In this document: in pieces, positions 2,613-59,298 of the stretch | Numbering within the stretch: position 1 is the stretch's first letter | Layout: the number at the start of each line of letters is the position of its first letter | Assembly: GCF_026571515.1 (NCBI RefSeq) | Contig: NW_026854712.1 | Span: 1 to 64,000 of the forward strand | From: Ruditapes philippinarum | Lineage: Eukaryota | Reading direction: 5' to 3' | Length of the DNA stretch: 64,000 nt | Made by a program: the position numbers and the translations under genes | Notes under the pieces: model-generated | The model's input: only the letters and a program-made list of their open reading frames with translations | Told to the model about the DNA's origin: nothing | Database searches by the model: none

Positions 2613-5600
2613 TCAATAGGTACCGTTCAAATGACTGTATGTGTCATCCTCAACACGCAGATTTTTATAATCCCTTTTAACATCATCATAATCGTTTTCT
2701 TGCTTGTCAGGTACACCATAGATATTGTCTGTTTTATCATTGTTCATAAAGTTTCTGGTTATGTGATTATATTTTTCAGTTTCGTTTAATGTTTCAGATA
2801 ATTCTTTTACACATTCAGTAATCTGTAATGCTTTTATTTTTATAGCTGCATTCTCGGTGGTGTCATAAACGTTATCAAATTGGGTACCAAACTTTTTATT
2901 GAAATGTATTATATTATAATCGTCGTTGACACCTCTTCCATCTCTCCTGGAATTTGAAATATCACCATTGGCATGAGATTCTTTGGAGCCTGGTTCAAGA
3001 ATGAAGTAATTATGTGCATAATTACTATTGTCTACGTCGAGATCTTGATGAAGGTTTACGTTATCGTTTCCTTTAAAATCGTTTATTTGTTCATTTTCAG
3101 CTCCTAGAGATTGATTATACAGATTGTTTTCAGCTTGATTCTTACTGGCAGTTTCTTTAAATGAATCATTCCGAGAAGAACTTTTAAAACACATGTTTGG
3201 AATTTTGCCTCTGAAAAATAAAATCGAAATAACATTTAAGATCTTATGACAATCCGTATTTTCAACCGAAAAAAATATGTTGATGATTATAAACAAACAA
3301 TTTAATGCAATCTTTACTAAGCGTCACATTAATAAAACTTACTTATACATCTTTACCTGTAAAAGCATTCAAAAACAAATTATCACAAATAATCTGACAT
3401 GTTATATGTGATCAAAAGCAAAGGTAAACTAGCAACGGTAAACAAAATGAGTTATTTACCGTCGTTTCAACATTATTATGACAATAACAATGGCTGCCAC
3501 TAAGAGTAAAATCACAACTGAAACACTGACAAGGATACTGACATTGGAACCTGCAAGATAACAAATGGTAAAACTTGAATGATCATATGGCACACCGTCA
3601 AGCCATGTCAAAGGGTATTATAATTTAATTTCAAAACTGTTCATAAAAGCGCAGATCTTATAACCGTTGACGTCACGATTCCGTCAAAAAGACATGTAGT
3701 CAGCCAAAAGACATATATGTCAAATGGATCAAAGCCTGCTATTCCTTTTTTGAACCATGTTTAGGGGCCGTTTATTTCAAGTTAAGGATACAGACAATAG
3801 CATTGATACGTAGTTAATTAAAAGAAAATGTTTTTATGATGTTTAAGCCAGGTATTTTAGAAGATATAAGACTTTTTATAAAGTTAAGAGGCTCGTTCAT
3901 TTATACAATTACACAAGAAAAAGGGCAAAAAGGGTGAAAAATTTAAACTGCTTTATTAGCATTTTGTTTCTGCATGTTTTGTTTTTATATATCAGACAAT
4001 CCGATTAGTTTTATTCAGAAATTTTCAAAGTGTTTTAATGTATCGTGATTCTGTAATGCAACAAAGCTTTAAAGTTTTAATATGTTTAGAAATTTCCTTT
4101 TAGAGAAACGAGCACTAATGCTGGAGTTTGTTTATTTAAACTATTAACAAAATGTAACATTTAAAGAAGAGGAAAATATATGTTTTCTTATATTTAGCAT
4201 GAAAGAAAGATGTAAACTTGTCATACGTTACATGTATTGCTTTTTCAACTAGCCATATGAATAGATTATTCCAAAATATTTGTACCATTTCGCAGTCCAT
4301 AAACAGATACTTTATACTGTAAATATCCATACAGCAAAAATCACAGACACTAAATTCGGTTGATTTACTTTGAAGGAGGAACTTGTCTGACGCAATGTTC
4401 CTGTGTAAAAATTATACCGAAAGTTTTGTAAACTATTATCTTTATAGTATACAAAAAATAATTTTCGTACGTATTTTTCCATCGAAATTCTTTTTTTGTG
4501 AAAATCGTTCTTCCCATTTTATTTGCTTTCTTTTTTATTTTACACGGTCTCATTTGCTTTTGAATCTGTGTTAACTTTTTAATGTTTATTGATGTGTTTG
4601 TTTTTTCTATGATATCAAAAGTGCTTATTTCTATATGCGTTCAAAGTTTGACTAATTCATGGTAGTTTACGTTTCCATTCTTTGGGCATTAATGAATTTG
4701 ATTTATAAAAGTCAATGTTTCTGTATGAATGTTTAAATTAGGTTTCGGCTAATCAAAGGTTTCAAACTACTTTTTTTAAATGTTAAAAATATCCTTTACT
4801 TTATTAATATTTCTACATTTTAATTTTTGGAAAAAAATTAGGAGCCATTATTTTTAATTGTGAATTCTGTCATATTATTTGGTCTTATAGATTTTGTGGA
4901 TTTTTATTAAAAATTATTTTACTTCATGTTAGAATAGTAGTACATGTAATTATGTTAAGAAAATATTTTCGATTTTAAATTTCTGTATATTATTTGCTTT
5001 ACATTAATTTTAAATTAATCGATTCCACCAATTCTTTGAATTTTTTTCTTTATTATTTATATCCACAATCCATGGTTATTTTCATCAAATACCTTTTGAT
5101 CTAGCTTGATTTAATCGAGTAAATGAAAATTGGCAAGTCTATCATATTTGATACTCTATATTTAAAGTCTTGGATAAGTATATCCCTTTTAACTTTGCCT
5201 CTTTTTGAGTGCCATGTATTCAAAATAGTTTTTGTAATTGTTCTCATCATTTCTTCAGGTAGACTCAAAAGAACAGATATTGTGATAGTTAGTTCTAAGG
5301 ACTTAAATACGGATATATTGACAATTGTTGTTAAATACCTTGCTATCCATTTATTTATGTCCTCTTTAATTTGTTAAAATTATTATTTTGTTTTTCGGAC
5401 TTACGACCTCAGACTTTAAGGTTAAAAAAACATGTATCGATCTCAATATAAGTTTCTTATTTTACGTTATTATGTTCATATATCCAACATTGAACAATTT
5501 TGTATTGGAATTATCTGTTATTAACTATGCATTAATCAGACATTGTAAAACGGGTTGAAAGGCTGAGTTTTTCAAGGCTAACGTAGTCTGTACCTTAAAC

Positions 5601-8600
5601 CGCAAACGATTGTCACCTGGCGCATTTATGAACCACCAGAACAGCCTCTACAAACAGGAATTTTGACAAAAGTACTACGGATATAGTTTTCTGTTTCTAG
5701 AGGCCGTTCAGTATTAATATAAATATTAAACAGATGTCGTGTTAAGGCAAACTGAAATAACTTCAATAAAATCTGTCCTTCGACTGTTATGAAAGACGTG
5801 GACTTTTTGCAGGACAACGCACACAAATAAGGTACTGAAATTACATTTTTAGAAAATGGCTGTCATTAAACAACCACCATATTCTCCATTTACTTGGCAC
5901 CCTGCGATTTTTTTCTGTTCCCAAGACTGAACAACATCTTGAGTGTCATCGCTACAAGAGTGGACATGAGCTTATTAGAAGATTTACCTAAGGAGGAGTA
6001 TGTCGAAGCATTAAAAATGAATTAAACGTCTGAAACGTTTCTTATGTAGGATGACGTTGAAATGGTTTAAAATAGGAAATTGTAAATGTTTGCTCTTTTC
6101 TTAAATTTAGTATATATTAATCTACTTTCGTATTCATATAAAATCTCCAATAAAATGTCAATTTTGTATTCTGACAAGCTAATGATTTCTTATAATATTA
6201 TTACATACAAATTGCATTTGTATAATTTTTTTTACAAATACCATTGAACAAAATTCGAATTTGGTTAAGAATTAAAAATGTTACTTACTTTCAAGTGCAC
6301 TAATTTCGTCATTTGATTGAAAGCCTTTCGTCATATTTATAAATTCATTCTGGATACTAGATGTTAATGTTCTGTCAGTTATTCTTGATGTAAATGGAGT
6401 AGTCGTATGCGTAGATATTCCTGTTGTTAAAATATAATTGTGTTTGGTTTGAAAATATGCAAAACCTATTTACAGTAAGTCTCCCCCTTTTTCAGCTCTG
6501 ACTTTTCGTCGCCCTGAATCAGGCTAGGTCATATAACGAGTTCATGTGCCCCTCTGTATTTTTTCCAGTCATTAACGGGACTCAAGTAATAATATAACTG
6601 TCTTAATCACACTGTATTAATCACACATATTGAAAATTTAGAACGTAGATTTTATGAAATAGAAAAAGAATCATTATTAAAACTGCAAGAAGAATTGACT
6701 TCTTTAAGGATAGAAAAAATGAAAGGCCATTTTGTAAGATCTAGAGCTAAGTGGACTGATTGCGGTAAAAAGCCCACCAACTATTTCTGTAATTTAGAAA
6801 AAATTAATTATACAGGAAAATTATACCATTTTTTACAGAAAAATTGGAGACCAATAATAAAAAATCAGAGAGATATTTTACAGGAAGCAGACTCTTATGA
6901 CACGCAATTATGTACAAAAGTAAAATTTGAGAGAACTATACAAGACACATTTTTCTTGAAAATAATACTGATACTCTGAAGTAAAGTACAGAGGTTTCAG
7001 ATTCTCTTATACTGAAATTAGAGATACCTTAAATAATATAAAAATGACAAAAGTCTTGGATCTGATTTTTTTCTGCATTTTTTTTTAAGTATTCTGGAAT
7101 AAAATTAGACATTTTATTATTTGATATATAAACTGTGTATTTAATGAAAATCATTCAATAATACATAAAATGGAATCATTAATTGCATTCCAAAAGATAA
7201 AAAAAACCTTATCAATTCTTAAAAATTGGATACTTTTCCTCTCTTAAATACTATTTATTAACTAGCTTCTGGTTTTACAGCAAAAAGATTAAAATCTGTT
7301 TTAGATTATTTAATATACAAGGATCAGACGGGTTTTGTTAAAGGCCGGTTTGTAGGGGAAAATACACGAAAAATATCACAATAGGTCGATGAAAAAAAAT
7401 TACATAGTGCTTTAAATATTTTGGAACATTTTGCTATATAATCTGGTCTAAAATTTAATTTTGAGTAAAACACATGTTTTTTGGATAGGTTCTTTAAAGT
7501 ACAGCATTAGGTCCATCAAAATGGAAACTGAACTGTGTCAGTACACAATTCAAACTACGTGAATTTTATTTTGATGTTAATTTGGATGAAATGATATGTT
7601 TGAACTTTGATGAAAACTTGAAAATATTCAAAATTCTATACAATACTGGAAAAAGAGAGAACTGACACCAGTAGACGTGTAAGTGTTATTCAGTTTTTAC
7701 TATTGCCAATGTTAACTCAGTTATTTATATCTTTTCCAAATCCAAATAGACACTGGATAAATAATATTAATAAAATGTTTTTTGATTATATATGGAATGG
7801 TCCATCTAGAATAAAAATATCATTGTTATTTAAGATTATACAGAAGGTGGTGGTATTAGCACAAATGAATAATCTAAAACTTACCTGCCTTAGAAGGCTT
7901 TTACTAAGAGGTGATAATAAATGTTATGCTTTAGCTAATGTTATTATCATTACTGAAACATTGTTCAATTGTGGAAGATTGTATGCTTAAATAGAATATA
8001 AAAACTCAAACAATCTTTTTTGGAAAAATGTTGTTAAATGATATTTTGATTTTATTAACATTTTCCCAATTGATAGTATGGACAAATTCTGTAGTACGCC
8101 ATTGTTTTATAATGATCATAACTTTATAATGGATCATAAACATGTGTTCTTTAAGGATTGGCATGAAAAGGGGATTGGATATGTCAGAGATATATTGGAT
8201 GCTAGCAAAAATGTAATACCAAAGCATGAATTTGATAGAAAACCTGCTTTAAATACAAAGTTCTAACAATTTGAAGCGTTAATTAGAAGCATCAAATACT
8301 TTTTAAAATCTAGAACAGAATTAATCCGTTACAAATCTATTTCCCACCTTCCCTTTGTGTTATTAAAACCTATATTACTATGTAAACAATGAACCTCTAT
8401 TATTTACAATATATTAACAACTAACGACGAAAAGCCTACCTCCAAAGCGGCTAGTTGTAGTGTTTTTGATAAAGCTCCATTGGAGTGGAAAATCTATACA
8501 GTTGGATTTTTAAACTAACAAATGATACTTATTTCTAATGGCTTCAATCTAAGCTTTTGCATAGAATTTTAGCTACAAATACTTTGTTTAAAATGAATAT

Positions 8601-11600
8601 TGTGACTGTAAAAGTGAGAATGAAACACTGCTTAACTTGTTTTGGGAATGTGATAAAATAAAGTCATTAATAGCAGATATTACTGAACATGTCAAATCAT
8701 TCAATGTAAACTTTGAGAGAGATTGCAAAACTTTTTATTTTGGGAAATACCAAGAAAATTTGAATGTTATAACATATTTTGCCTATAAACCAAAAGACAT
8801 ATTTATTTATATAAGAGATCATAATGTATTGATCCACATCTGGATGGGCTGAAAGGAAACTTAAAATAAGCATCATCAATTGTTAAAAACACAAACATTT
8901 TGGAAAATAAACTGTCAAATTGGTTCATGGTAAATTTCCCATGTGAAATATAATTATAAATATCAATGATTTGCTTATGATTAAATTTAAGATTGTTACA
9001 AGTGGATTAGTCTACACATATTCATTTTATTTTTCTAAGAAGCTCAAATATTTAAAAACAATAAAAAACAACAACAATATAACACAAAAACTCCGCTAGG
9101 AATGTATCATTTGGATATTCTTATAAAATATTGTTAGAAGTAAATAAAATGCAAAGTGATTCAAGAAGAACTTAATTGAATTTAAATAATTAAATATGTT
9201 GCATTTCATTGTAAGCCATTCAATTAAAAAAAGAAAATGGTATTGCAGTATTTGTATATCAAAATTGTTTTGTTAAATTGTATTGACGTAATTACTTTTA
9301 TCTTAATTGCACATAATATTAATGTTACATGTATATAACATGCATTTGTAATAAAAAATATAAGTGTTTACTAATGTCAGGCAAGTTAGTCTCATAAATG
9401 ATTTTAAGAATGTCAGTCTAAAGGTGTTAGATAAATGTTCCGAAATATATGTCTCTATATATAAGCTTCGTTTTAACACGAACGTACATCTTACTTCATT
9501 TTCCTTGGAGCATTAGTATCAAACATTGGTAATGATGATTAAGTATGCTGTTTTTATAGTACATTTTCACAAGGGTAGGAAGAATGTTATCTATAATCTA
9601 TAATTCTTACAATAGATTTTTATAAAAATATTCAATGGCTACCAATATATTCAATCACGATTATTACTTAGTAATTGGATATTCTCTCAACATTACCTTG
9701 TGCTGATATCCTGGTGCTAAGAATTATGTTTGTGGTTTTGGTAGGATATAAAGTCACGTATGTCTGTGGTATAGAAGGTGAGGTCCATATTGCTTCCTTT
9801 AATGGTTTAGTTATAACAACTGCGTTCAATATAGAATTGTATATTTATTTTAACTCATATGGTTGTAAGTGTCAATTCAAAGGACACTTATTTTTATTAA
9901 AATATGGTAAACAAGTTAAACAAAGAAAGGTGGCATTGAAAGAACGCAACCCCCACACGATCTAGCATCAAGGACCAGCGGTCAGGAACCCATGAGAGCC
10001 CCAAATAAAATAAGAACAGGACATAAGGCAGAGCACGGACAGGATACGTACTCAATAATACTTTAAAGGAAATAATAGTAACCGACAAGGAAATCAGATA
10101 CAATTTATTGAGTAATAGGCCCATAACGTAAAAGGCACATGGGAAGGGAACTTCAAGTACGGGAAAGGGGAGGGACAAAATTTAAAAAAAAGAAACTACG
10201 GGCAAAAGGGAATATACTAACCAAAGACGAGAAAACAACAAGGGACACAAACACAAGTGTCACCCAAACAGTATAAAACAACAAAGACATACATCTAAGG
10301 AATACAGAGGGGCGCCGTTTTGGAATTGTCAGCAACATAAGCATTGCTTGGCAGGTTTAACCGATCATTGGTGACCAAACCTCACTCTTAGCACCACCAT
10401 CGTCCTATAAACGAGGTTTTATTTAACGTCACATACGTTGATTTTTTTCTATTGTTATTGAATAATTTAACAATGTGTAATATTAGATAATGCTTTCAGC
10501 AAGACGCTAATTAAAATGTTTGAATAAAATAAATCTATGATAACTATAAACTTACGTGTTTGAAGAAAATATGGTTTCTTTGTTCTGTTCAAGGTAAATG
10601 AAAGAGTTGTAATGTTCCCATGTTTAGTAACATATCCATACCCTTTAACGTTACTTCGATGAATTTGACTTTTGAAAGTATCTAATAATAAAAAAAGAAA
10701 GAAAAACACGCACAAACAAGAAACGCACAAAATTCAAAGTTTGTCATTATGTTTGGTTGTATTTCTTTTCTACAAATGTCAGTTCTTTTACACCATATGT
10801 CTGCGTATTGTTTTTTTTATTTCAAGATCCATGAAAAGTACATTTATCTGTTATATGTTAAATCATGTCGTATCACAATTGGTGAAATGAACAAATATAG
10901 TGTACCATATTCAAAGATAATTGATATAATACAAACATATGCAAAGATCCAGATGTGCACTATTCTTTGTATGAAATGATAATTTTGTTTGGCGGCCATA
11001 TGGAAGAAATGTTTGTTAGTTGAGAAACGAGGAATTATCTTGTAAACGACTCACTTGAGTCAAGTATATGGATATAGTGCACATCTAGATCACCGTTATG
11101 CATTTACTTTTTTATCGATTCTTAATTTGTAATCCAAATGAAAAACTTACTATCAGATTTGAATATCACATCACTACGTATAATATTCGTCCATAATTGA
11201 CCAGTAATTTGATTCACTTCTACACTCAACGTGTCATTATAGGTAATCGGGAAACGTTGAAATTCAAAACATGTTTGCACATAAATGTTCCAACCAACAT
11301 ATCTTACATCCTCAAATACAACATTGGATATATTAGGATCTGAAAATAATGAGGAAAGTGTTTGCTTAAAGGTAAACTGTCCTAACCAGACAATTTGTAT
11401 CTCAGCTAAATATGTTGTTCATCTTTAAAACATGTTCTCAGTTGTCTCACAAGTTCATGTAAACCAACTAACCAACGCACTTGTATTGTCAACATATTGG
11501 ACACTTGACTTAAAATTGATGAAATAAGAAAAGTCTAGTAAGTCTACTTAATCTATTGTCGTCTGCAAATTTTGAATATTAAAATAGTTAATTTAATTTT

Positions 11601-14600
11601 GTCGATGAAACTCAAGACTTATTGAAACAGATTTACAATAAGTTCTCATTAGAAAAGAATGTAATTCTTTGTATTCTTATATCTATTCTGTAAAGAAAGT
11701 AAAATAACCCTGTTGGGCACACTCTGCAAACACTGGAAATTGCACAACCAAAATGCAATGCGATTGTCATATGGATGTCATTACTTTCCAGGAAAAACAC
11801 AAGCCTTAGGACTACAGTCTGTTTAATTAAACGGAAATAGCAGCAATACCTTCCCTTCCGAGAAAAAAAATCCTTAATAATCTCAATCTTATGAGCATCT
11901 GTATTGCCTCAAATAAAAACATAACAAAGGAACAACTGGTATAATAGTCTGACCTGTCACAATATAGATATTAATAAATGACATGTCGACTGTGTTTAAG
12001 AAAAACGTAATGAATACCATGTTTGAGACATTAAATCTTTTTTAAGGAAACATTAGTTCGTTTCCTGTTACTTTAATCATCCCCGTTTCAGTAATCATCC
12101 GTTTCTTTTTTCACGTCGGGTGGTGGGGGGGGGGGGTGATTACAACTAATAGAATCGGCATTTTAGGTTTGCATCAATATTCCAGAACACTTTGGTGCGC
12201 TTACAACAATGTCAATATCATATAAAAAAATGTGCTGCAAAGGCAAATATAAATATTATTTTGAAATTACAAAGAAAAGTGTGGCAACACGTTACTTCAG
12301 TGTTATTATATTTTTCTGGTCCACCGGTATCATTGATTCAAACACTTTAAGTATATATGAAATGAGTACCGCTCAAGTCGGTGCTAGGGGGCGTGAGGGA
12401 CGTTGCACTTTTCATTATCCCTCATGTACAGACTCAATCAAACCGAGTCAGTAATATCATGAAATATTGTTATGATTAATGCTTCCGATGGATCACACTT
12501 CATCCAGTACTTTATACCTTAACTTTATTCGTACTATTTCCTATGATACCATTAAATATGTTAAACTGACACTATGATTTGAAGCGATTATAGAATTTAT
12601 ACATTACATATCGACAAGCCTTAGAATCAAAGTCCCCGATAATATGAGAGAGCGTGCAGCTCAAACAGGGATAGAAGATAAGTAAATAGAAAACCTTTAC
12701 TGTTTAAAATTATGTTTATTTGTTGATAGTGTGTTCTCAGGGGGAGATTGTAAGTGTATAAGGGAAAACAAAAAAGAAAGAAATGTTATGTTAATCCCTG
12801 CCAGTTAATCCTTAAACCCAAATCAACCATACAAGCATACATGATATAATTGAACTAAAAATATGTCTCTCAGTATTAAATGATATAATATCGTAATGAA
12901 TTTTGAAATGTTGTATTATTAAACATGTTCGACCACCTAAAAAAATTACTGATGAATATTTTTTCTAACTCAACAAATAAAAATTAAAAATATACTATTT
13001 ATCATAAAACTTACATATTGCAGAAAAATCATTGTATACCTTTCGTACATAGTACTTTATACGCTGTGCTGCACATACTCCATACACCTTTTGTGTTTTT
13101 TTCATAAGCAAGACACTTTCCGTTGTTCTTGCTGCCTATTACACTAGTATCTGAAAGGGAAACGACACAGTTATGACGAATACATAAGAGTCACTGAACT
13201 ATTCACATTCGTGTCGCTATTGGTCAATTCTAAACTAAACAACAAAAGAAAAAAAAAATAGACAAAGATTTGTGTTCCCTCTGACGTTGATTAGTCCAAA
13301 CCTATTGGTTAATATATGGAAAAGTAGGTTTTTACAATAAGAATGTTAATATACTTTTCAAGCAAATAAGCATAAGAAAAATAAACGTTCACACACTTCT
13401 ATAAAAGTATTGAAACACTAATGATGCTTTAAAATGCTAATAAGTAAATTGTAACAAAGGTAAAACAACTTCAATTATGATCATGATACCCGTTTTCATT
13501 CTTTCATATATGGACATATAATCATCTCCTCCACCAGCTACCCAAGTTCCGTTATTAGGTGAAATATCACATTTAGGCAGATTTATGTTCTTGCTTGGTT
13601 TTTCGTTTAAACAAATACACTGCGACAAAGAAAACAAAAAGATCCAATTAATTCTTTTACAGCAATAAACGTTGTACTGAAAAAATGATATCAGTTTCTT
13701 ATCACATTGTAAAGTTAGCACTATATCGATATCAAATCACAATGATAAACGTTCTCTTGGATGTATCTATTTAATACAAACATATTGAATAAATGATATA
13801 GTTATGCTCATTAATTAAAACATTATTTCTAAACTTTTCACCCAATAAAATTTAAATAATTTAAATTATTCATCACACAAGACGATTTTTTATTATTTTT
13901 TGTTGTTACCATGTTGTTTATTACCTTGCCTTTGTTTAACCCGACATATTTTGTATAAGATTTATGACACATTGAAAAGCAAATGCCTGGGGTATTCATC
14001 AATACCGGCAATAAAACATCTGGTTCTGTATTGTTTAAAGAGCCACATCCTGTAATATGTAACAATAATTCATGTTTTAAACAGTATATGAGAGCATGTT
14101 CGCAATAAATCTTGACATTACTAAACTAGCATAAGCATCTTGGAGTATGTTTATCGATTTTATTTACATGTGTGACCATTCCTTTGTCAAAGAAACGGAA
14201 TTTCTTACAAGAAAAGCTATATGCTGGTAACAACCAAAAACAATACTATGACATCTTTTCTATTTCCTTTAATTCCTGAACATACTGACCATTGAGTTAT
14301 TACATACATTGAGAATTGTAAACAGGTTTTTTTTTGTTATATAATGGGACATAAGTAAATACGCAGATATTCTGAAGTGAAACAAAAATGTTTATTCCTA
14401 ATGACATACAAAAAAAATTAGAGAAATTATGAATCCCAATAGAACGTCTAAAAGAGCAAAATTGAAAATGTTATAGACTCGGTTTGATTGAGCCCGTTCA
14501 TGGACAATATTATTAAGTGCAAACTACCATCCACTCGCCTAGCACCAGCTTAAGCAAAATTCAAGATTAAACCATGAAATGACAAACATTTTAATTTAGA

Positions 14601-15310
14601 AACATCCGCTGATAATTATGTTAATACAGCGGTTATCATGGAACTTTCAATGTGACACGTTAGTGCCATTCCATGAAAACCGGCACATGGTCCCCAAATA
14701 ATAGAAAGCGTCTTCCCTAAACGAGAAAACAATGGGCGGAACTTAAAATGAATTTTTAAAGGCACATTTGTCTTTAATATCAGCTATTACGAAAAAATGT
14801 TTTTGCTTAAAATTTGTTCATTTTTTTCTAAGCTAAACTAAATTGTTTGTTGTTATTATGATATTGCTTGCAGGCAAATATTTAAAAAAAAAAGATACAA
14901 TGTGAATGCAAATGCTAATTACGAATTTAGAACACTTTGTTGATCCAAATCTTATTTGCAATACTAACAACTGTTTATTTATTTTTGCATTTTCAAAGTC
15001 AAACAATTCCAATTTAGAAAGAAAATAGCTGCAATGAAATAACAAATAATGAAAGAATCATCTACCATTCCAATTTCTTGCTTAATAAAATATGAATTTC
15101 AATTAGTCAATAAGTCATTACCAATGTATGCAAATGCTGTTTCTTTCATGTAATATCCAACCCATGCTTCTTCATTGTCATTTAGGTTAGAAACTTCTTC
15201 AACAATAATTGATGAATTATTTACATGTATCTTTGGTGCTGCCAAATTGCCTTTTCCCCTTGCATCTTGCCACGTAAACGATTCGTTTGATAGTACATAA
15301 TTGGCTGAAA
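2613..15310 (-). CDS. Gene A: multi-exon type I membrane receptor (CTLD-like/WSC ectodomain, Ser/Thr stalk, TM, ~200 aa tyrosine-rich tail), ~620 aa; first exon unresolved (near 17040-17320)
   Basis: Phase-compatible GT-AG exons read by hand: 15310-15122 (YVLSNESFTWQDARGKGNLAAP..AWVGYY..FAYIG), 14049-13925 (GC..NTPGICFSMC..YVGL), 13619-13490 (CIC..KCDISP..AGG..SIY), 13150-13040 (GKCLAY..WSMC..VLCTK), 11339-11151 (GWNIYVQTCF..LWTNIIRS), 10681-10556 (GYGYVTK), 9819-9697 and 6420-6289 (Thr/Ser-rich), 3550-3460 (TM: VSILVSVSVVILLLVAAIVIVIIMLKRR), 3210-2613 (tail, the real part of ORF 2613..3296). No stops; exon order and phases match genes B and C. Confidence 0.85.
3930..5540 (-). mobile_element. 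Decayed LINE (L1/Tx1-like) 3' fragment in gene A intron
   Basis: Minus-strand CDFC..YLFMDC..VQIFW resembles the C-terminal zinc knuckle of LINE ORF2; frameshifted and full of stops; boundaries approximate. Confidence 0.55.
5570..6075 (+). mobile_element. Mariner transposase C-terminal relic
   Basis: ttgcaggacaacgca (LHDNA-like) and ccaccatattctcca..ttggcaccctgcgatttttttctgttccca (PPYSPxLAPCDFFLFP). Confidence 0.75.
6620..8890 (+). mobile_element. Decayed L1/Tx1-like LINE ORF2 (reverse transcriptase region) in gene A intron
   Basis: Motifs RSRAKW..KKPTNYFCNLEK, DQTGFVKGRFVGEN, SGLKFNF, FFDYIWNG, LLHRILATN, LFWEC; many frameshifts and an internal deletion. Confidence 0.85.
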
Positions 15311-16282: not shown

Positions 16283-16420
16283 TTAATACACGTCTTAGTA
16301 GTGCTAGAAGGTGATAAACGGCCATGAAATGAATAATAGCCTCTGACTGAAGACCTTGGGGCCATTTTTCATTTTGAGGGCCGATAATCACCTTCCGGTC
16401 CTAGTCTGCCGTGTATTAAT
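16283..16420. repeat. Imperfect palindromic (hairpin) element
   Basis: ttaatacacg..gaaggtgat..cggcc..aaatga arm mirrored by tcattt..ggccg..atcaccttc..cgtgtattaa. Confidence 0.7.
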
Positions 16421-35730: not shown

Positions 35731-36236
35731 TGTTGGCTACACGCATAAACTTCATATTAAGTGTCACTAGTTTTTTTTAAAGAGATCATATTTATGAAAC
35801 GCAGGATTACTTCCTCATGTAAAAACGCCTTAACAGTGTTTAAACTTTTTATGACGTAATAAAGAAATATTTCATGCTTAATAAATTCAATATTGATATC
35901 AATTGAATAGTTTGGTAAGAGCTGTCAACATTACACCGGTACAGAATGCACGCCCTGAGATCTATGTAAAAGATGAAAGCTGCTTTTGGGCCTTAACAGG
36001 CGGATGGACCCTTATTAAGCATATTGTTGGCTACACACATACTCTTCATAGAAGACTAGTTTTTTTTTAGAGAGATCATATTTACGAATCGCAGATTTAC
36101 TTCCTCATGCGAAAACGTCTTAAGAGTGTATAAACCTTTTATGGCGTAATAAAGAAATATTTCATGCTTGATAAATTCAATATTGATATTAAATAAATCA
36201 GTCAATATAATAATTTAGTAAGAGCTGTCAACATTA
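35731..36236 (+). repeat. Local tandem duplication, ~295 bp period
   Basis: tgttggctacac..agagatcatattt..ttacttcctcatg..gtaagagctgtcaacatta at 35731-35933 and 36025-36236. Confidence 0.85.
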
Positions 36237-49500: not shown

Positions 49501-52500
49501 CTTCTTTGTTTGGTAGCTGTTAATGTAGACATTTTTATAAAATAATGTCTCTCCAAGTTTGTTTTTTGCTTTCAGAATCTTACTTTTGTCCTCCTGACTT
49601 CTACACTCACAAACTACAATTCCTGGAACATTCTCCCTCGTATATTCCCTTCTATCCACATTAACAAATGAAATGTCCGGTATCTGCAATACTTTTTTCA
49701 CCAAGTCTGACATTCTTTTTGTAATATCTTCAGAAACATTGTACGGTAGATTCCGCACCACAATATTGCATGTAGTATCTTTGTTGCTTACCGAAGTTTC
49801 TGTAGTTTGGAATTTGGCCATCTCTTCCAACCGCTGATTCACGTCTTCCATATCATTTGTTAGTTCAGACTTTAAATCACTTAGTCGGTTTTTATACCTT
49901 GTGAAGTCGTTTTTTAATCTTTGACACTTCAGTACTAATGCGTTTGTCAAAGACTTTTATCAAAAATACATAATAAAAATACATACATAATAAAACTTCA
50001 TTGATGTAATACTCGTATATGAGGTACAGAAATACATTTGAAGAATATATGATGTAGTTTTATCTGCCAAAAATTATTTAATTTGAAAGAAAATGGTAAT
50101 TTTCATATTTTTACTACATTTGATTCCTTGCACCGCACCATTATTTGAAGCTATCACCATTGACATTCTTACCATTAAGATATTCCTTTAACAGATTCTG
50201 TACAAATTATAAGGGGACCTTTTACGCACACATTACTAGACTACTTAGAAATATCACATTGTGTCACAACGCGAATCCTAAAAACAGCGCCAAGGATACT
50301 CAATAAATTACCGGTACTTTAGAACATTGACATTTGGCGAAACGTTTATGTATGTCACTAAGAAAATGCAAAATTGTTTTTATTTTATTTTGAATTTTCA
50401 ACATAAATTATGAAAAACTTTAAATATCGGATCTCACAAGAGTTGAAATGTGATATTAAACTTTATCAAATTGTTATAAATCGATGTTATGGCCAGATTT
50501 ATAACATTGTCCTGGACAAGTTTGTCAAAGTTTTACTTTTTTAAATTCGTTTTTCACATGACTAAACACATTGAAATTAACATTTAACATTTGTAAACGA
50601 TTTTGCAACTTCCATATATGGCATTTTCACGGAAATGGACAAAAATTAATAGGCGGAGCCAATTTTCACGAAAGCAGAATGTAAAGAGAGATAACTGTTG
50701 CTGGTACAAAAATATTTCAAATGTCACATAAATCAACTGCATTACAGTTGACTTAAAATATCCTCTGATTTTGTTAAAACGTAGTCTAGCACAGGATATT
50801 GAAGTAATGCAAAATTGGTTCAGATATAATGTAACAACGTTTATACTGATAATGAGCATAATAATATACAAAAGCTAAAGTTGGTGAATTAACAAAAGGG
50901 AATGTTTCCTATTTAATAAGGACACAAACCACATATGGCGCTTAGCTGGCTTTTCATCGACTTCAAACGTTACAACGTTTTAAATTGTTGAAGAATTCGT
51001 ACGGATGTCTTTTACATTCAGCAAAAAGTACTTAAATGCGATACATGGAAGTCACTTTTGGCAACACAACTAAAGAGAAATGAACAGTAAGCCCGTGCCT
51101 TCTTTCTTTAAAGGACTATATGGGGTTGCTGCAAGGTAGGTTTCCGAGACTTTTTAAAACAAGACAACAACGGAATTTCTCATACGTTATTCTCGGGTAA
51201 CTGTTTAAAGGAAACTCGGCAGAGCCTCGTTACAGCCGTAAACAGTTACCCTCGAGCTAGATATTCTGGTGTAAGCCAGTGTAAGATTCTTATATCATTT
51301 CACATTTACAAAATCGTCGCATTTGCATAACAGCTATTTTGCCGTTATATGCTTATTTAATAGGGAGTGATAATATGACATCCCACATCTTCACAGTCTC
51401 GTAAAGTTTATACAATTGTACCAGAGGCATTCTATATGTTCGCAACATTTTCTCTCCTAGGACCAAAAAGTTGTATTTTTGAGATATTTACTAAAAATGT
51501 ATGTTGTCAACACTTAGATGAATGAGTTCACACTAGACTCAGTAATCAAAAAACGGTAGAGGAAAAAGGTTACCAATGTGGATGATAAACTCAATAAATT
51601 ATCGTCCGACTTAGATAAAAGAGTTCTTACAATTGAGGACAAATTAATTGCTTTAAAGAACACGGTTGAATTACACGATTCTAATTTCGATTAAACAAAA
51701 GGCCAGGTATCAATTTTACAGTCTGAAAATAAGAATTTTAAAGAGACTATTACAGATATCCAAGCAAAGTCTATAATGTGCAATTGATCCTTGTTGAGAT
51801 CAAAGAAACAAAGGATGAAACAAATGAGACGCTTGGAAATATTCAAAACACTTACAGAACGATTTAAAGATTCCGGATCAAGGTATTGTTAGGCTAGAAA
51901 TTGAAAGTAAGAGACGAATTGACCTTCGGGAACAAAGCAGTCCGTATGGGGCGGTACTCCAGAAATAGTATATATTCCGCCTTAAATAACCATGGAAACG
52001 CCACAGCGGCGCGGTTCAAAACACGTGACGCATGTTGATTAATAATAATCAAAGTGCATGATACAAAAATGTATTATGTCCAAAATTTGCCGGGATTTGG
52101 TGTAAAACCCGAAAAATGTCATGTTGAAATTTCACGCCATTTGAACAATAATAATATTTTGAATAACTGTGTCAACCGTTTGTAGTTGTAACGTTATTTA
52201 TTCGTAAACGTCGTCATTAAGAGCTTTCAAAAAGAAATTCAATAATTGTAAATATTTACGTTTTTTTAATTCCGAGTGTATTAAACATTCAAAATTATAA
52301 TTGGTACCTTTGTTATATGAATTGTTCTTTTGAAAGAATTATACTAAACCTGTTCAATGATATATCATGCTTAATAAAGGCAGGCACCATATTTTGTATC
52401 TAGCAGTGAAGTATAAAAGTATTACAGGTGTGACATGAGAGAAGTAGTCAGGTCATAGCCAATGCTCATCGAGCAAAATAAAGCATATGAAGATTGCAAA

Positions 52501-55500
52501 GATAATTTTTATAGTCACTTTGAAATATCCCTCATACATTCCTTATAAGATATTTACGAATCAAAGTTGTTCAAACTTTGTGAAAATGTTGCAATACTGT
52601 TTTTATGTTAATATTGGTATATAATGTGTTATCTTACATCATAAACGTTAATTACATAATTATTAAGAACTAAAATTGGTTTGCATTTTATGTATAGGAA
52701 CTATAAATTTAATAAAGAAAAAACTGTTGAGGGGCTTAAAGTTTATAATACAATTTAAAAAAAATTCATTTACAACAAGTCTGTTTTTGCAAACATTCTA
52801 TAAATCCACATCAGTACCTCAATTCAGCTTAATAGAAAGGGAACAACTTTTATTGCTATTTCTTTTTTTTTTCTGCGCCAATAGCCAATGCGATTACATT
52901 CAAAAGATTGTCTTGAAAATGTTTATACATGTACATCCTTATTCCACCTCGATTGAAATTTCAAATATATTTATATATATAAATATATATAATAAGAAAA
53001 TTATAGATTAACAACTTGTTGCACATAGTGCAGTTTTTTGTCTTTTTTCAGGTTCTGCTATCGTTTCTGTCCAGTATAACTCACAAACATACTTTTCGTG
53101 GAAGCATTATGTGAAAGCTTGTTTCGGAAGAAACTTGTCTCCAATCAGCTATAATGACACCTTGAATTCAACAAGTATAATCCAGGCTACAAGTCCAACA
53201 TCGACAAATGTTATTCGCAGTGATGCAGTATATAGATTTAATGGTTAGTTGAAAATTATTTCTCACGGTGAGCTTTTATTGTCTTCCAAAAATTGTTCTA
53301 ATGATCTTGGTTCTTTGCCATCTGGTTCGAAAGAGTTAAAATATAAAAAAGGGGAAAAAGATCAATAAGGAAGGGTAGCATTCAATGAATGCATTCCAAA
53401 CACAATACATAATCTGAAATATACTGACATGAACTAAGATATATTACTAACGAAACGGTTAGCATCTTCTAAAGAAAATCTGTCAAGTTCTGTAAAAAGC
53501 ATCTTTTGTCGAAATTGGCTTCTTTCAGCAGGCAACTGGTTTGTATAGAGTAATACTTAAAAAAAAAAATAAAGTCTTCTTTAGGATCGATCACAAGGCT
53601 CTTATGTAATAACACTTGGTTTCCCATTAGTGTTATTGTACATTTTAGTAAACGAAAGCATCGTTGCTCGGAACAATATGACCAAGTTTAGAAGATTTTC
53701 CTTAATAGAGTATTTATCTTCCCTTTGTGTCTTTCGTAGTAAATAGACTTAAAAGAAGACAGAAAGAACCACATGAATTTGCTTTTAAAATTGCCAAAAA
53801 GTTAATGATAGGTAGAAATGTTTTATGGACCATGATAACAGTTAAATAAATAAGTGCCCCTTAATAAATATTCCTCCACGGGTTTGAATTATTTACATCA
53901 TCTTAATGTAGAAATTAACTTTGGAATATTTTCAGAAGCTATAAAGCAATGAAAGTATATACTTGTCATCATGAAGAATTACCATGCGGTCCCGATGGGC
54001 CAAAATACCCTTGCTCTTTAGGCATCTCAGTAACATTGATTTGTACAGGCAGGATACATGAGCTTTAAAATATTTTCCATGGTCCGTTTTTTTCCGTTTT
54101 TCCATTTGTCCGGAACCACATGCCTAAAATTCTATGGAACTATTCCCCTTTTAACATATAAATGTAGATATATATGAGTAAAATAAAGTTTCTATATCAT
54201 TAACTGTTCCTACGTACACAGTATTAAAATCAAAATCACTGGCTTTTTATTTAGACCAAAGACAAAAAATGAAAGATAATTTTAATTAGATTTTTGAATT
54301 AACAAAACCAAACGTTTGAAGACAATGTTTTCTTTCACCCAAAAATATTTTTACTTCTTATTTGTCATATTTGTTTTTTTTCTTTTTATTTTTTTTTAAA
54401 CATAAAAGTAAGTCTGGTGTCAAATATTGCAGTTTATGAAACAAGTAATTATTCAATTAAATATGATTGATCACGACAAAGACATTCCATTCATTTTCAT
54501 TACCATGGAAATCTTTCACATCTAGAAGTTTAAGAGATTGATTTTAAATATAAAAATACTTATTTTAATGAAAAATAATTTGTTTCAACTGAAATCATCA
54601 TATGGGTGTTGTTTTTGCAATTCTAAAAGTAGAGGAGCAATATCACAGTTAAGTTTGATCAGAGCTCTTATAAAGATTATACGGTACCTTATCCTTTCAG
54701 TATTCATAAAATTTAAGGGTATTGTCCTAACAGTGTAGAATTCAGAACGATTAGTAGTATACATCTTCTACAAGGAAAATAAACAATGCACTCGACATTA
54801 AAGTTTAACTAAAACCTCAGATTGAAATTCGCTAACAAACGTTCATCTTATTGATAATATTCATAATTGTAAATCAAAGTTATGACAATAAGTGACAAGT
54901 AAAGGTGGTTGCACTACTTATACTATAAATTTACATACTAGACATTTAATATGGAATTGTTATCATATTCCCATTGAATTACATAAGGAGAATAATAAAC
55001 TTAAATTGATAGATAATAACCGACATGATTATTTTCCAAATCTTTTCGTTTAATTTCAGAGAAACCAAATGCAATCAGTACAGATGACAGTATGAAGTAT
55101 GGATATATTACTAAACGTGGGAACATTACATTTTTACTTTTCACTGAAACTAGTTCAAACAAACGCTATCTGCTTCAAATAGGTAGGTTTAAGCTTACTT
55201 GTACACAACAATACTTTCAACTATACATTTGAGTTTTGTGTAATATACATAATGGTGATTGTATCATTTAGTATAAATATATGACATGCATGAGAAATTG
55301 ATAACGCTTTTTTTTATTGGGTTGTAAATTTCTCTTGTACATTGGATTGACATTACTCTCTGAACCATAAAAATGCAAATTGGTCGATTGCTTTATCGGT
55401 AGAATGTTATGGTTGTCACAAATGTTCGCTTATTTTAGTTAGCTACAATGTACAGGGGGTTCGATAGACAAAACATTTACAAGGACTGTACATTCCCTCC

Positions 55501-58500
55501 TTTTTGACAATTATTTATCGAATTCATTAGGGGATATTTGTTTGATTGTGAGTTAAAAATGTTAAATATCACACCGATTAGAGAGAAAAAAATGCAGTAT
55601 TTTTGAATGCAGTAATTTTTACGAATGCGTAGCGCGAGTAAAAATGTGGAATATTCTTTTCACATCGATGTGTGATATATTGGTCTTTTTTGTGGAATGT
55701 GTCAATTTGGTTTTTTCACTGTTTTATAAATTCAAACCTCTGTCACCTAACTCAGTTTAATAAAGTGTTTTCAGTGATGTAAATTGAATTATAATATTTA
55801 CGGACAAAAGACGTCAATAATTTGTGAACACAATTAGGTGGAATAATAACAATGCTGCAAAATTACAATTGAGTAATACCGGTACAAATAATTTATGACT
55901 AACAATCAAAATCAATGGTATTATAGACAAGACACTATATCACATTAGTTTACATTAGCCCCTTTATTCTTTAAACATTTTTAATCATACCTGCATGTTT
56001 ACTTAATAATTGTTTCATCTGTATTATAAATACGTCACGATTAATTGGTGATGGACATTTATGTCTTTGCCAGAAAAACTAAGCTTGATTTTCAGTTTCG
56101 CAACCACATCAACAACACGACAACAAACCAGATATCCTTCTTAAACTTTTTAAATATTTTGAATAAATAAATAATAAAAAAAAAAACAGCAGCAAAAAAA
56201 CTGTCATTATAATTATCATAAAATCTGTCATAACCTGGCCATTATGAGTCATTTTGGGAAATGTTTTGGTGACAGACAATTTCTGAAGTAAGAATACATT
56301 TTAAAGATGTAAAACATATTATCTATACATTACCATATAGGTGATTCACCTATATAATGACTAACCAGTTTTCGTTCTCATTGTTTTGTCAAATAATTTC
56401 AGATTCAGAGACAGGATTAAATCTACACAGTGAACAAATACGGACAACAACCACACCGACATCAACGACCAAAACTTACACGAAAACCACAAGGTAATAT
56501 TCACAAAATATGTAACTATCATTTAACGTGAATAATTGGAAATATAGCCTGTAAATGAATTCTTAAAATCTGCATAAAAATTATATTGAGATATTTATTT
56601 ATCAATTGACTTGTCTCCTTCTGCTCCTTAGCATTTGACTTTTTCTTTTAAAGGAGTCATGAACATTAGGAATACGTTTTTTTCATGTCAATTAAATCCT
56701 TAAATTTTTCAATAATTTGGTTTGATTACGTTTAAAAATAATTTTGTTTTGTAACTTTTTGACGACAGTTTTCCCAAAATTTTTCCCAAAAATTTTTTAA
56801 TGGGAAATTTTTCCCCTTAAAATCATATTTAATTTGAAAAAAAAGAAAAGATAAATGAGTATTCCCTTTTTACTATCAAACGCAGATAATGGGGAAAACC
56901 CAAAAAATTCCCTCATTTTCCAATAAAAAATTTATCTATTCCAATCCTCCACACCTTTAGGTTTAAAAGATGGATCACGAATGTTTTAGAACCCTCCCGT
57001 CAATATCTTTTGACAAAATATTGGTGTTTTGTTATGTCAGTTATGAAAACCCTTTTTGTTTAACGGGATATTTTAATAGAAAAAAAAGCGAAAAACAGGT
57101 TTTTCTAATTTGTAAAAGGGGAAATAGCCCCAGAATTTTAAATCCCGATTGCCGAGGTTTTTTTTTTCTTCTCTTTTACGTTTTCTCTGACCCCATTTTT
57201 CCAAAAGAAAGGTTCCCCAAAATAAAGATACAAACTTAAAAAATTTACTAAGTTAAAACTGAAAATCAAAAAGTGTTTTTATGTTTTTTTTTCTATTTTA
57301 CAAGGAAAAAAAATTTTACCAAAAAAAAACCCCAAAAAAAACAAAACCAAAAAACAAAAGAACTTTTAAATAAAAAAGTTTTAAAATTTTTATTTATTAT
57401 ATAAAAATTATATTGATAAATAAGCTCTAACTTTTCAAAGTTTTCAAAAAGTAAAGGAAAAAGGGTAATGTTTAAATTTTTTTTTGAAAGGGGAAACATT
57501 AAATTTTATAACCTTTTAAAAAAAAGGGTTTTTGGCAATTTTCTTGTTTTTTGAAGAAAAAAGCGGTGAAAAGGAAAAGAAAAAAAAAAACGTTTTGAAT
57601 AAAAAAAAAAACATTTTTGGTGCATTTTTGGGCTTTTACATTTAAAGTAAAACCCAAAAACAATATATACAAGAAAATTTTTTCAAAAAGATATCAACGG
57701 GCCCCCCGCCTCAGGGGGGTTTTTAAAAATGGCTTTAAAATTGGTTTCTATTTCAAAAAATTTTTGGTTTTATTTTTATTTCAGTCAAAAATTTTAAAAA
57801 CAAGGCTAGATCCCGCAAAAACAACAATTAATTTATTAAAAAAAGAAAAAACAAGGAAATTTAAAAAACTATAAAGTTAAGCTTTTACCTTTTACCCTTT
57901 GGGTAGAGATGCAGGTTTTTAAAAAGACAAAATTTGTCTTTTTCATTTTAAAAATATTTTTTGCCAAGTATTTTCAAAAACCTTTTAATACGAAAAATTT
58001 AGACCGGGCACAAATATCTTATAACAGACTATTTAAACTTTTTACCTTTAAGTGTGACTTTTGACGTAGGAACCCATGTTTTGCGCGCCTGACATATCGT
58101 CTTATTATTGTGATTATTTGTGGAGTATTTTTTTATATCCCTTGATATAAGAAAAAGTTTATGGGCTGGACACAAAATAAACCCTATTACAGACCATGTA
58201 AATATTTGACCTCTAAGTGTTACCTTGACCTTGGAGGTAGGGACACGGGTGTTACGCATGACATATCATCTTACCATTGTTACTATTTGTGCCAAGTATT
58301 TTTCAAAGTCCCTTGATCTATGAAGGAGTTATGGGCGGGACAACAAAATATATCATATAACAGACTCTGTTAACATTTGAGCTCTAAGTGCGACCTTGAC
58401 CTTGAAGGTAGGGATGCAGGTGTTGTACTTGACATATCATCTTATTATTGTGACTTGCCAAGTTATTTTAAAATCCTTCGAACTATGAAGAAGTTCTAGA

Positions 58501-59133
58501 TCGAACACAAAATATATCCTATAACAGACTATGTTAATCTTTGACCTTTAAGTGTGACCTTGACCTTTGAGGTAGGTGACTAGTTTTTTGCGCATGACAC
58601 ATTGTCTCATTATTGTGAACAATTGTGTAAAAGTATTTACAAAATCCCTTCAAAGATAAGAAAGTTTATGGACCGGACACGACATATACTCTCAAAGAGA
58701 CAATGTTGACCTTGATTGAGCAAGTGCGACATTGACCCTGAAGGTAGGGGTCTGGTTGTTATACATGACACATCGTCTTATTATAACAAACATTTGTGCC
58801 AAGTTATTTCAAATTCCTTTGTATGGACCGGACACGAAAGTGTGACGGACGGACAGACGGATGGAGCCTATTTCTTTCTATTATCCCCTTTTTTGTTTGA
58901 AAAGGCGGAGGACAAAAATTATATATGATATATGTATCTGAATTAAATGACATGTTTGCCTAATGAGAACTATGAGTACGTACAATGTTTATATTGCCTT
59001 CGTCATGAGGTGTACATAGTTATTTCATATATATTTGTTTACAGGTTCTGACGTTAGTGTCTCTGTCAGCATTTCAGTTGTTGCTGTAATCATTGTGGTA
59101 GTTATTGTTACAATAATAAACTTTAAAAAAACG
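37559..59133 (+). CDS. Gene C: third paralog of the CTLD-like/WSC receptor family, closer to A than to B; terminal exon unresolved, two apparent +1 indels in 3' exons
   Basis: Exons: 37559-37616 (MSRTLGVCWIFLCITAAAN), 42804-42995 (YYVLSNETASWDNAK..AWVGYY..FAYIG), 43793-43917 (GC..NNSPGNCFSLC), 44164-44287 (CFC..KCDISP..AGG), 45505-45618 (GKCLVF..WTRC..KLC), 53052-53243 (SWKHYVKACF), 55060-55182 (KYGYITK), 56403-56493 (Thr-rich), 59045-59133 (TM). Exon-by-exon homology to gene A; exon 3 is 125 nt in both. Confidence 0.8.
38195..38363. repeat. Palindromic element in gene C intron 1
   Basis: tattagttata..tggcc..tttgtaaatataacccgagccg mirrored by cggcttgggttatatttacaaa..ggcca..tataactaata. Confidence 0.75.
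39130..40560. repeat. Composite minisatellite/satellite region in gene C intron 1
   Basis: ~60 bp units with gcctagtcatatttgag (39200-39460); ~200 bp units with gaagcgtcagaatg / tatgtgctaccga in direct and inverted orientation; 30 bp caggctgctaggctgcaaggctgccaaatt units (40440-40550). Confidence 0.8.
43650..43772 (+). mobile_element. Probable SINE 3' fragment just upstream of gene C exon 3
   Basis: tactcaggtgcccgctcgtgcctgaaataa..gggcacct..aggtctt..acgtaaaaccc resembles a bivalve SINE body/tail; recognised from memory, not from a search. Confidence 0.5.
44460..45477. mobile_element. MITE with CA(C/T)CGTGTATATC termini in gene C intron 4
   Basis: catcgtgtatatccagtaacgccggga.. is inverted at ..ttccggcgttacttgatatacacggtg; further inverted sub-blocks (taccgttttgagtgtaattt / aaattacactcaaaacggta); flanks tattc/taatc could be a decayed 5-bp TSD. 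Confidence 0.8.
46940..49950 (-). mobile_element. Decayed, internally deleted LINE (CR1/L2-group-like): ORF1, APE endonuclease, RT, C-terminal zinc motif; in gene C intron 5
   Basis: ORF1-like 49456-49950 (NIVVRNLP..KILKAKNKL..VYIN); APE motifs GFWNVN, GGVGIF, LGDFNGR, SVVDYC; RT motifs AFIDFRKSYD, LRQGCIL, degenerate LLFDD, YIYLG; C-terminal LAKFRCG..LEIGRY..DVMHV. Confidence 0.92.
51570..51960 (+). mobile_element. Possible LINE ORF1 coiled-coil relic
   Basis: Translates with stops to KLSSDLDKRVLTIEDKL..ITDIQAKS..N..IKETKDE, resembling the ORF1 coiled coil and NLL-x-GI-x-E motif. Confidence 0.4.
58000..58920 (+). repeat. Satellite-containing non-autonomous element (tgaccttgacct core, ~165 bp units, ggac microsatellite and terminal hairpin; Helentron/HINE-like)
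   Basis: About five tandem units with gtgaccttgaccttg..ggtaggg..atgacacatc, then ggacggacagacgg and tcccct..gaggaca hairpin; related decayed copies at ~41500-42150. Confidence 0.7.
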
Positions 59134-59298
59134 GTAAAATCAACATTTATAATTACTCAAATTTTGAATGATGTAAATTGAATTTGGCAACAACAAAATA
59201 TCCCCCTTCTTTTATAGAGAACTTCTTTCGTAACAATATTACAGATTCTTACACAATTCATTTTTTTTCCGCTATCAAAGAGACAGAGTGCATACCAT

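Follow-up and report, generated by a model that had tools for sequence, protein, structure and literature searches.

The first 64,000 nucleotides of contig NW_026854712.1 of Ruditapes philippinarum (RefSeq assembly GCF_026571515.1), referred to here as the window, form an AT-rich stretch (GC about 0.31) that carries three members of a multigene family, so far seen only in venerid and mactrid clams. The three genes, named A (minus strand), B and C (both plus strand), lie in a head-to-head plus tandem arrangement, with A and B adjacent. As predicted from sequence, intact genes of the family encode type I membrane proteins with a signal peptide, a composite ectodomain that combines a WSC domain with a C-type-lectin-like fold, a Ser/Thr-rich stalk, a transmembrane helix, juxtamembrane cysteine and a cytoplasmic tail carrying tyrosine motifs. 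An initial annotation of the window had proposed a hidden cluster of three spliced paralogs of this kind, and exon models were obtained for A, B and C at the positions claimed. The word hidden holds in that exons of 52-190 nt escape an open reading frame (ORF) list, which therefore shows only the tail exon of A; it does not hold for B and C in the databases, where RefSeq already has gene models for both, labelled 'uncharacterized protein'.

In a six-frame self-comparison of the window, short open frames were common to 10.4-15.4 kb (minus strand), 20.4-25.2 kb (plus) and 42.7-55.3 kb (plus), and exon borders were then set from splice sites and homology. Exons were searched singly, with reading frames verified exon by exon through phase arithmetic, and whole-protein analyses were run on database proteins equal or related to the spliced products, not on self-joined models. 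The common exon plan that had been claimed is borne out by the intron phases, which are identical in A and B (1,1,0,1,1,1,1,(1),2), and so is the strong divergence of the ectodomains, the identity per exon being 38-62% between A and C and about 28-52% between B and either A or C.

Gene A (2613..17489, minus strand) has 10 exons that add up to 1743 nt, or 580 residues plus a stop, with AG/GT at every junction and zero in-frame stops. Exon 1 (17438..17489) starts with ATG and encodes a hydrophobic signal peptide, similar to the N-termini of P0003 and P0007, up to a phase-1 donor. It is followed by exon 2 (15122..15310), the N-terminal half of the C-type-lectin-like fold, with a W..A... helix and a WVGY strand, where a cysteine of the family has been lost. 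Exons 3 and 4 (14049-13925 and 13619-13490) encode the WSC domain, recognised through homologs with WSC and divided by a phase-0 intron, and here the last two WSC cysteines are missing. The remaining lectin-like halves are in exons 5, 6 and 7 (13150-13040, 11339-11151 and 10681-10556), and the Ser/Thr-rich stalk is in exon 8 (6289..6420). The transmembrane helix (hydropathy 3.56) with its KR stop-transfer residues is in exon 9 (3460..3550), delimited by splice sites, and the long cytoplasmic tail, which ends in YKNL-x6-YSHL, is in exon 10 (2613..3210). This tail had been described as having about 12 tyrosines; many tyrosines are indeed present, the count in the tail exon being 11.

Spliced transcripts of gene A are represented by P0122, a protein of 372 residues from a public assembled contig of 1,744 nt (source Logan) that is intron-less. 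P0122 runs unbroken from the end of exon 5 via exons 6 and 7, the stalk and the transmembrane exon to the tail, with the junctions of exons 5 to 10 as modelled. Compared by eye with gene A, its stalk and transmembrane segments are identical and exon 7 differs by one residue, and by tblastn the tail is 92% and exon 6 86% identical. Because the genomic exons are scattered across more than 10 kb, this contig can only derive from a spliced transcript, either of A or of one of its alleles. Further family members (P0030, P0032, P0044, P0047 and P0048) are found as intron-less contigs of 1.6-3.9 kb. No annotated protein for gene A was found in the protein searches.

Gene B corresponds to RefSeq LOC132740835 (P0115, 444 residues) and occupies 18731..28817 on the plus strand in nine exons. 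These amount to 1335 nt, that is, 444 residues plus a stop, with canonical splice sites and an intact ORF, and they are equal in length to P0115 and 98-100% identical to it per exon. Exons 1 and 2 are found at 18731-18788 and 20490-20666, and exons 3 and 4 (20972-21093 and 21451-21589) encode a complete WSC domain with eight cysteines, matched by Pfam on P0115 residues 77-153. They are followed by exons 5, 6 and 7 (24111-24233, 24968-25156 and 25698-25871), by exon 8 with the transmembrane helix (28085..28172) and by exon 9 (28553..28817), which holds a short tail of 87 residues in the exon. Along this tail a juxtamembrane CC is followed by SSYQNV, HTYCAL and SEYSQL, and the stop codon lies 5 residues past the last tyrosine. 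An extra cysteine pair, GMCRS in exon 6 and KRCDAS in exon 7, occurs in gene B (P0115 residues 260 and 286) and, in the alignment, only in the B-type protein P0015, which suggests a putative additional disulfide specific to the B lineage. Introns 4 and 7 of gene B contain inverted-repeat pairs (22165-22563 with 23229-23666, and 26057-26230 with 26980-27181) that look like foldback insertions or insertions resembling miniature inverted-repeat transposable elements.

Gene C corresponds to RefSeq LOC132740837, a model marked 'partial' (P0109, 339 residues), and occupies 37559..56491 on the plus strand. Its exons, whose positions are approximate, lie at 37559-37612, 42801-42995, 43793-43917 and 44164-44290 (exons 1-4) and at 45505-45620, 53052-53243, 55060-55182 and 56403-56491 (exons 5-8), and each is 98-100% identical to P0109. 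The RefSeq model ends at the first stalk exon, at 56491. A frameshift in this exon was considered and dropped, a good donor (AAG/GTAATA) being located exactly at the end of the partial model. Further downstream, the second stalk exon that relatives of C possess has left no more than a degenerate trace, if any, near 56899-57015 (E 0.15-0.26), and a transmembrane-like exon (59045..59133, plus strand) is near-identical to that of P0110. This exon has 89 nt, compared with 91 in A and 88 in B, and is thus out of the family reading phase. A tail exon of either kind was not recognisable anywhere on the contig of gene C. Therefore gene C, for which a stub tail had earlier been thought possible, is best read as a copy degenerate at its 3' end and not as a designed decoy. 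Some other members do have shortened products: in R. philippinarum, P0097 and P0116, paralogs of C and B, are isoforms without the transmembrane helix or with a stub tail, the annotated isoform P0097 of the C paralog being the one that lacks the helix. The family may thus regularly give rise to secreted or tail-less forms.

Several repeats accompany gene C. The intron between its exons 5 and 6 holds a decayed retroelement of the non-long-terminal-repeat type (47113-49950, minus strand), one fragment of which matches Pfam RVT_1 (E 7e-6), with the adjoining frames broken into several ORFs. The first intron has a 193-bp tandem repeat (2.2 copies, 39842-40255) and a 30-bp repeat (3.8 copies, 40439-40552). 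Also, upstream of the transmembrane-like exon, at a distance of about 350 bp, there is a 171-bp tandem repeat (58086-58688; 3.6 copies with 74% matches), and the short repeated ORFs at 58146-58925 arise from it and are not coding exons.

The family extends well beyond the window. In the R. philippinarum assembly (1.41 Gb, 15,874 contigs), exon 2 of gene A has at least 33 matches and its tail exon also at least 33, of which 10 contain stops. Two relics are present in the window itself: a copy of the A tail exon with its flanks (32321..33252, minus strand; 81% nucleotide identity over 961 bp), with 3 in-frame stops and without the transmembrane exon, and a stop-bearing fragment of a B-like exon 7 (895..982, plus strand) found by tblastn, with 85% nucleotide identity to 25688-25775. 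Together, these counts and relics bear out the pseudogenes that had been noticed and support the birth-and-death evolution proposed. A profile built from 14 exon-2 sequences recovered 96 proteins among 1.84 billion, and the named relatives come only from R. philippinarum, Mercenaria mercenaria and Mactra antiquata. All named matches are 'uncharacterized', 'hypothetical' or evidently mis-named, and full-text literature searches turned up no publication that describes a family of this kind, in agreement with the initial annotation, which knew of no named family with this architecture. This suggests an undescribed, lineage-restricted family of surface receptors. The cysteine framework and the tail motifs are conserved across the three genera, and in Mercenaria the LOC numbers of the family genes are close to each other and belong to a single chromosome. 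One Mercenaria mercenaria protein, P0005 (LOC123561668, 838 residues), has the whole lectin-like/WSC module tandemly duplicated before the stalk and transmembrane helix, and ends in another kind of tyrosine-rich tail.

Two other contigs of the assembly, C6433 and C724, also carry an A-like long-tail gene beside short-tail genes (loci L002, L024, L026, L031 and L032). The possibility that they are recent alleles of the window was ruled out by a non-coding identity of 77-87% and a synonymous divergence (dS) of 0.12-0.25; given this non-coding identity, they are paralogous segments or very old haplotypes. The A-like genes on these contigs are annotated only as transmembrane-plus-tail proteins of 234-235 residues (P0123 and P0124), and it looks like the small ectodomain exons were missed. 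RefSeq under-annotates the family, gene A lacking a full model and its paralogs being represented by such fragments.

The WSC domain is the best supported part of the ectodomain. With a Pfam gathering cut-off of 27.8 bits (PF01822), P0115 scores 30.0 bits over residues 77-153 and profile positions 1-82, and P0117 (31.6 bits), P0110 and P0028 (28.2 bits each) are above the cut-off as well, with P0003, a long-tail relative of C, just under it (23.9 bits). Searched as single exons, the genes gave one weak WSC match only (E 0.0099). An AlphaFold model of P0015, a close paralog of B, was used for the structure searches, its ectodomain having a predicted local distance difference test score (pLDDT) mostly of 82-95. 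This model matches yeast Wsc1 (PDB code: 7pz2) with a Foldseek TM-score of 0.72, a root-mean-square deviation (rmsd) of 2.7 and a VIA Z of 11.9, and Kremen with a Z of 10.5-11.1; a profile search against the PDB also returns WSC (E 2.9e-7). The eight WSC cysteines are complete in B and most members, and in A, C and their relatives the last two are lost together. The WSC domain proposed for these proteins is thus confirmed both by the Pfam score and by the fold match to 7pz2.

The second component of the ectodomain resembles C-type-lectin-like domains (CTLDs). In a wide VIA-align search of 48,161 representative chains, the best 50 rows include 46 CTLDs (ranks 5-50; Z 6.6-8.3, about 80 residues aligned), among them NKG2D, LLT1, NKp80, CLEC-2, Mincle and the clam lectin SPL-2. 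A separate comparison with CD23 gives Z 8.0 at an rmsd of 2.7. Moreover, weak profile-versus-PDB matches (E 0.07-0.7) fall in the correct register, the exon-2 region with CLEC5A and CD69 and the exon-6 region with NKG2A and CD94. In a protein atlas, the look-alikes beyond the cluster of the family itself are first a WSC/Lectin_C cluster and next Lectin_C clusters, which are taken as leads only. Several observations speak against a lectin-type fold: a Z of 7-8 is what models that lack a clear match usually reach at best; Pfam Lectin_C (PF00059) gave no match in 13 family proteins (10 at E <= 0.1 and 3 at E <= 0.01); and the motif pair of the Ca-dependent sugar site, EPN/QPD plus WND, is absent from the ectodomains of 13 members. 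Also, Foldseek found WSC and no CTLD, the CTLD signal coming from VIA-align only. Given the structure matches to CTLDs, the lack of a Pfam match and the absence of the Ca/sugar motifs, the fold is termed here C-type-lectin-like and not a member of Pfam Lectin_C; the earlier label of CTLD-like stands as a fold-level resemblance and not as membership of the Pfam family.

The position of the WSC domain within this fold appears unusual. Every CTLD alignment extends over residues 23 to about 310 of the model, so that it begins in exon 2, ends in exon 7 and encloses the WSC domain (68-166). Two cysteines, Cys35 in the exon-2 helix and Cys308, the last one of exon 7, are both missing from 4 sequences as well as from A and C, and nearly all other members keep the pair. 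When exons 2-5 are folded alone (P0041), pLDDT is about 50-60 outside WSC, and this low confidence gives weak support to an inter-dependence of the lectin halves. The alignment span, the co-lost cysteines and the poor folding of exons 2-5 alone together suggest a split lectin-like topology, in which exons 2 and 7 could form one lectin-like unit and exons 5 and 6 a second, permuted one. We know of no described architecture like such a nested or swapped lectin-like pair with an inserted WSC domain.

The tails of the three genes differ, as had been claimed: A has a long tail, B a short tail, and C no tail exon. The long tail, of about 200 residues in a single exon, is found in most members. Eight tyrosine contexts are common to 9 paralogs and to Mercenaria and Mactra proteins, which confirms that the tail tyrosine motifs are conserved: HxYFxLE, D/NxYNxL/I, YDTTExAA, E/D-D-T-Y-N-H-I, TDNxYG, a DY pair, DTY(S/N)H(L/I) and a proximal NxY. 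The tail of A carries the family-conserved motifs HxYFxLE, DxYNxI, NVYDTTE, YNHI, TDNIYG, DYDD and DTYSHL. Several of the long-tail contexts are of the form acidic-YxxL/I, those that read acidic-x-Y-N/S-H-I/L included, which resembles the hemITAM (a half immunoreceptor tyrosine-based activation motif, ITAM) of CLEC-2 and Dectin-1. A complete ITAM at the C-terminus of A (YKNL-x6-YSHL), as the initial annotation had it, was rejected because it is not conserved among paralogs: the nearest ones read YENNL or YKNNL at this place, and more distant ones lack the first tyrosine. The spacing YxxL/I-x6-12-YxxL/I is matched by 7 of the 33 family tails and is not family-wide.

The short tail is found at six loci in the genome, 68-85% identical overall, with a dS of 0.06-0.39. 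Each of them retains S-x-Y-x-x-V/L as the first motif and S-E-Y-S/T-Q-L as the last, and they end at the same point. In gene B the corresponding SSYQNV and SEYSQL fit the consensus of the immunoreceptor tyrosine-based inhibitory motif (ITIM), (S/I/V/L)xYxx(I/V/L), the two motifs being about 34 residues apart near the C-terminus; the ITIM-consensus motifs claimed for B are thus upheld and shared by every short-tail locus. On the other hand, the idea that B has a different kind of tail is not sustained. The short tail aligns with the proximal long tail of B-like genes, HTYCAL corresponding to HxYFxLE and SEYSQL to NxYNxL, and is a truncated derivative of the family long tail that ends just after its third tyrosine. 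The tyrosine of SSYQNV is new, the long-tail relatives having ADPNIEV at that place, and the serine at position -2 of the last motif is new as well. One more kind of tail, the third, is present in Mercenaria; it contains xxYESL three or four times, in line with the ITIM consensus, and belongs to genes that adjoin long-tail genes on one chromosome, judged by LOC number.

The relation between tails and ectodomains is a mosaic. Three lineages of ectodomain carry the short tail, namely the B type (P0115 and P0015), the C type (P0110, which is 93% identical to the product of gene C over the common part) and a third type (P0119), these ectodomains being 25-31% identical and the tails 68-85%. Conversely, the B-type ectodomain is found with a long tail in P0117 and P0020 (compared with B, 69-76% identity in the ectodomain and 36-38% in the tail), and the C-type ectodomain with a long tail in P0003 (compared with P0110, 66% in the ectodomain and 21% in the tail). 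The occurrence of similar tails on diverged ectodomains and of different tails on similar ectodomains argues that tail exons have been exchanged between ectodomain lineages. Both combinations persist, which is the pattern that defines paired receptors, and this mosaic is stronger evidence for a paired-receptor system than the window alone. By its clustered genes, similar ectodomains and contrasting tails the family resembles such a system, and activating, inhibitory and immune roles are what we infer from the analogy.

In the explanation that we favour, tail exons would be exchanged by unequal crossing-over or gene conversion; the ectodomain would bind a glycan or protein ligand; phosphotyrosines of the long tail would recruit effectors with SH2 or PTB domains; and the short tail would recruit an SH2 phosphatase that damps the signal. 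Within the window, A is the long-tail member, B the short-tail member and C the 3'-degenerate copy. The structural and family part of this explanation is, in our judgement, very probably correct. The part that concerns tyrosine signalling and paired outputs falls somewhat short of an even chance, and for the explanation as a whole (a clam family with a nested ectodomain, exchanged tail cassettes and tyrosine-signalling paired outputs) the chances seem evenly balanced. A more specific proposal, which joins the swapped lectin-like pair (outer exons 2 and 7, inner exons 5 and 6 permuted, WSC after the first WIGL-type strand) to an independent venerid paired-receptor system that arose via shuffled dual-ITIM and multi-tyrosine tail exons, must be regarded as tentative and rather unlikely to be right in every element.

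Certain properties of the tails weigh against paired tyrosine signalling, and two alternatives build on them. The long-tail members have no charged residue in the transmembrane helix, unlike vertebrate activating partners. Also, the ITIM and YxxL consensus sequences are short and fit YxxPhi sorting signals too, so that the proteins could be endocytic, scavenger, adhesion or mechanosensor-type receptors, with their tyrosine motifs serving as AP-2 sorting signals or cytoskeletal links. The best structural matches, the Wsc1 mechanosensor domain and Kremen, agree with this idea, as do the passage from a Ser/Thr-rich stalk to a single transmembrane helix, found in Wsc1 too, and the Y-x-x-hydrophobic form of most of the conserved tail motifs. 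However, eight separately conserved tyrosine contexts with acidic flanks exceed what sorting needs, AP-2 binding does not call for the serine that each of the six short-tail loci keeps at -2 of two tyrosines, and the swapping of tails between ectodomain lineages suggests selection for different outputs. We consider this alternative improbable, to about the same degree as the next one.

According to this second alternative, the short tail would be a truncated, signalling-dead long tail that acts as a decoy or dominant negative, its ITIM matches being by-products of inherited YxxL motifs. The alignment of HTYCAL and SEYSQL with long-tail motifs speaks for it, and the transmembrane-less and stub-tail isoforms P0097 and P0116 fit it as well. 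Sequence constraint points the same way and away from signalling: in the motif windows of the short tail, variable columns are not significantly rarer than elsewhere (Fisher p = 0.19), and the ratio of nonsynonymous to synonymous divergence (dN/dS) over the whole tail is mostly 0.4-0.8, with 1.2-1.3 in two pairs. Nonetheless, all six short-tail loci, which span three ectodomain lineages, carry the new tyrosine of SSYQNV as well as the new serine at -2 of the final motif, and their open frames share one end point.

A third alternative leaves tyrosine signalling in place and concerns the biological role only, the receptors serving gamete, self/allo or settlement-cue recognition and not immunity. 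It draws on the fast evolution, clustering and lineage restriction of these genes with lectin-type folds, and WSC and CTLD modules co-occur in polycystin-1; we hold it to be quite unlikely. Finally, the view that the cluster is non-functional debris, suggested by the 3'-degenerate gene C, the two relics and the stops in 10 of 33 tail matches, is largely refuted for A and B by their intact ORFs and canonical splice sites, the RefSeq model of B, the spliced contig P0122 for A or an A allele, and the cysteine framework and tail motifs conserved across three genera, which makes it very improbable.

Returning to paired tyrosine signalling as the preferred reading, a comparison with known systems places the clam family apart from each of them. 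Wsc1 and Kremen1/2 (PDB code: 5fws) share with it a true WSC domain (Z 11-12, 23-30% identity), and Wsc1 also the succession of WSC, Ser/Thr-rich stalk, one transmembrane helix and cytoplasmic tail; the clam WSC, however, appears nested in a lectin-like fold, without Kringle or CUB domains, and is followed by a tyrosine-motif tail in a clam-restricted family. The natural killer (NK)-type and myeloid lectin-like receptors (CLEC-2, Dectin-1, NKG2D, CD69 and Ly49) are similar at the level of the fold, at ranks 5-50 of the structure search. The NK-type CTLDs likewise have no Ca/sugar motif, and Ly49 genes are clustered with contrasting tails. In contrast to these receptors, the clam proteins are type I and not type II, have no Pfam Lectin_C match and a fold apparently split by WSC, and their long tails carry their own motifs, with no adaptor pairing via a charged transmembrane residue. 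The resemblance to KIR, LILR, Siglec and Ly49 lies in tandem clusters, birth-and-death evolution, ectodomains 66-76% identical with different tails, and one tail class with two ITIM-consensus motifs. The ectodomain fold is unrelated to that of the Ig-type paired receptors (KIR, LILR and Siglec) and not homologous; the likeness to vertebrate paired receptors would be convergent.

Bivalves have no adaptive immunity, yet they have huge and variable repertoires of recognition genes. To our knowledge, little is understood of how they balance activation and inhibition, studies in oysters having been confined to single receptors with an ITIM or a hemITAM. Functional precedents are CgCLec-HTM, which signals through a hemITAM-Syk-ERK-Rel pathway as summarised in PMC12842671, and CgNCAM1, with two ITIMs and SHIP2 signalling (PMC11841013). 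Both are bivalve surface receptors of type I that bear YxxL or ITIM motifs, and their pathways indicate that the downstream machinery exists in bivalves. The use of hemITAM-Syk and ITIM-SHIP2 pathways by oysters thus makes the tyrosine signalling proposed for the clam family plausible. In contrast to the clam genes, each of these two, as presented in those sources, is a single gene that encodes a canonical CTLD or Ig/FN3 ectodomain without WSC, and neither forms a tail-swapped cluster. If the proposal is true, the family would offer an invertebrate parallel, open to testing, to the pairing of KIR, Ly49 or Siglec receptors, reached convergently via tail-exon exchange, and the nesting of a WSC domain within a split lectin-like fold would represent a new way to build a recognition module.

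Outside the three genes, a duplicated, near-identical segment was observed within 60619-61790, where 60845-61033 matches 61281-61484 on either side of a run of N (61123-61260). This run is also flanked by (TG)n microsatellites, at 60734-60804 and 61578-61652.

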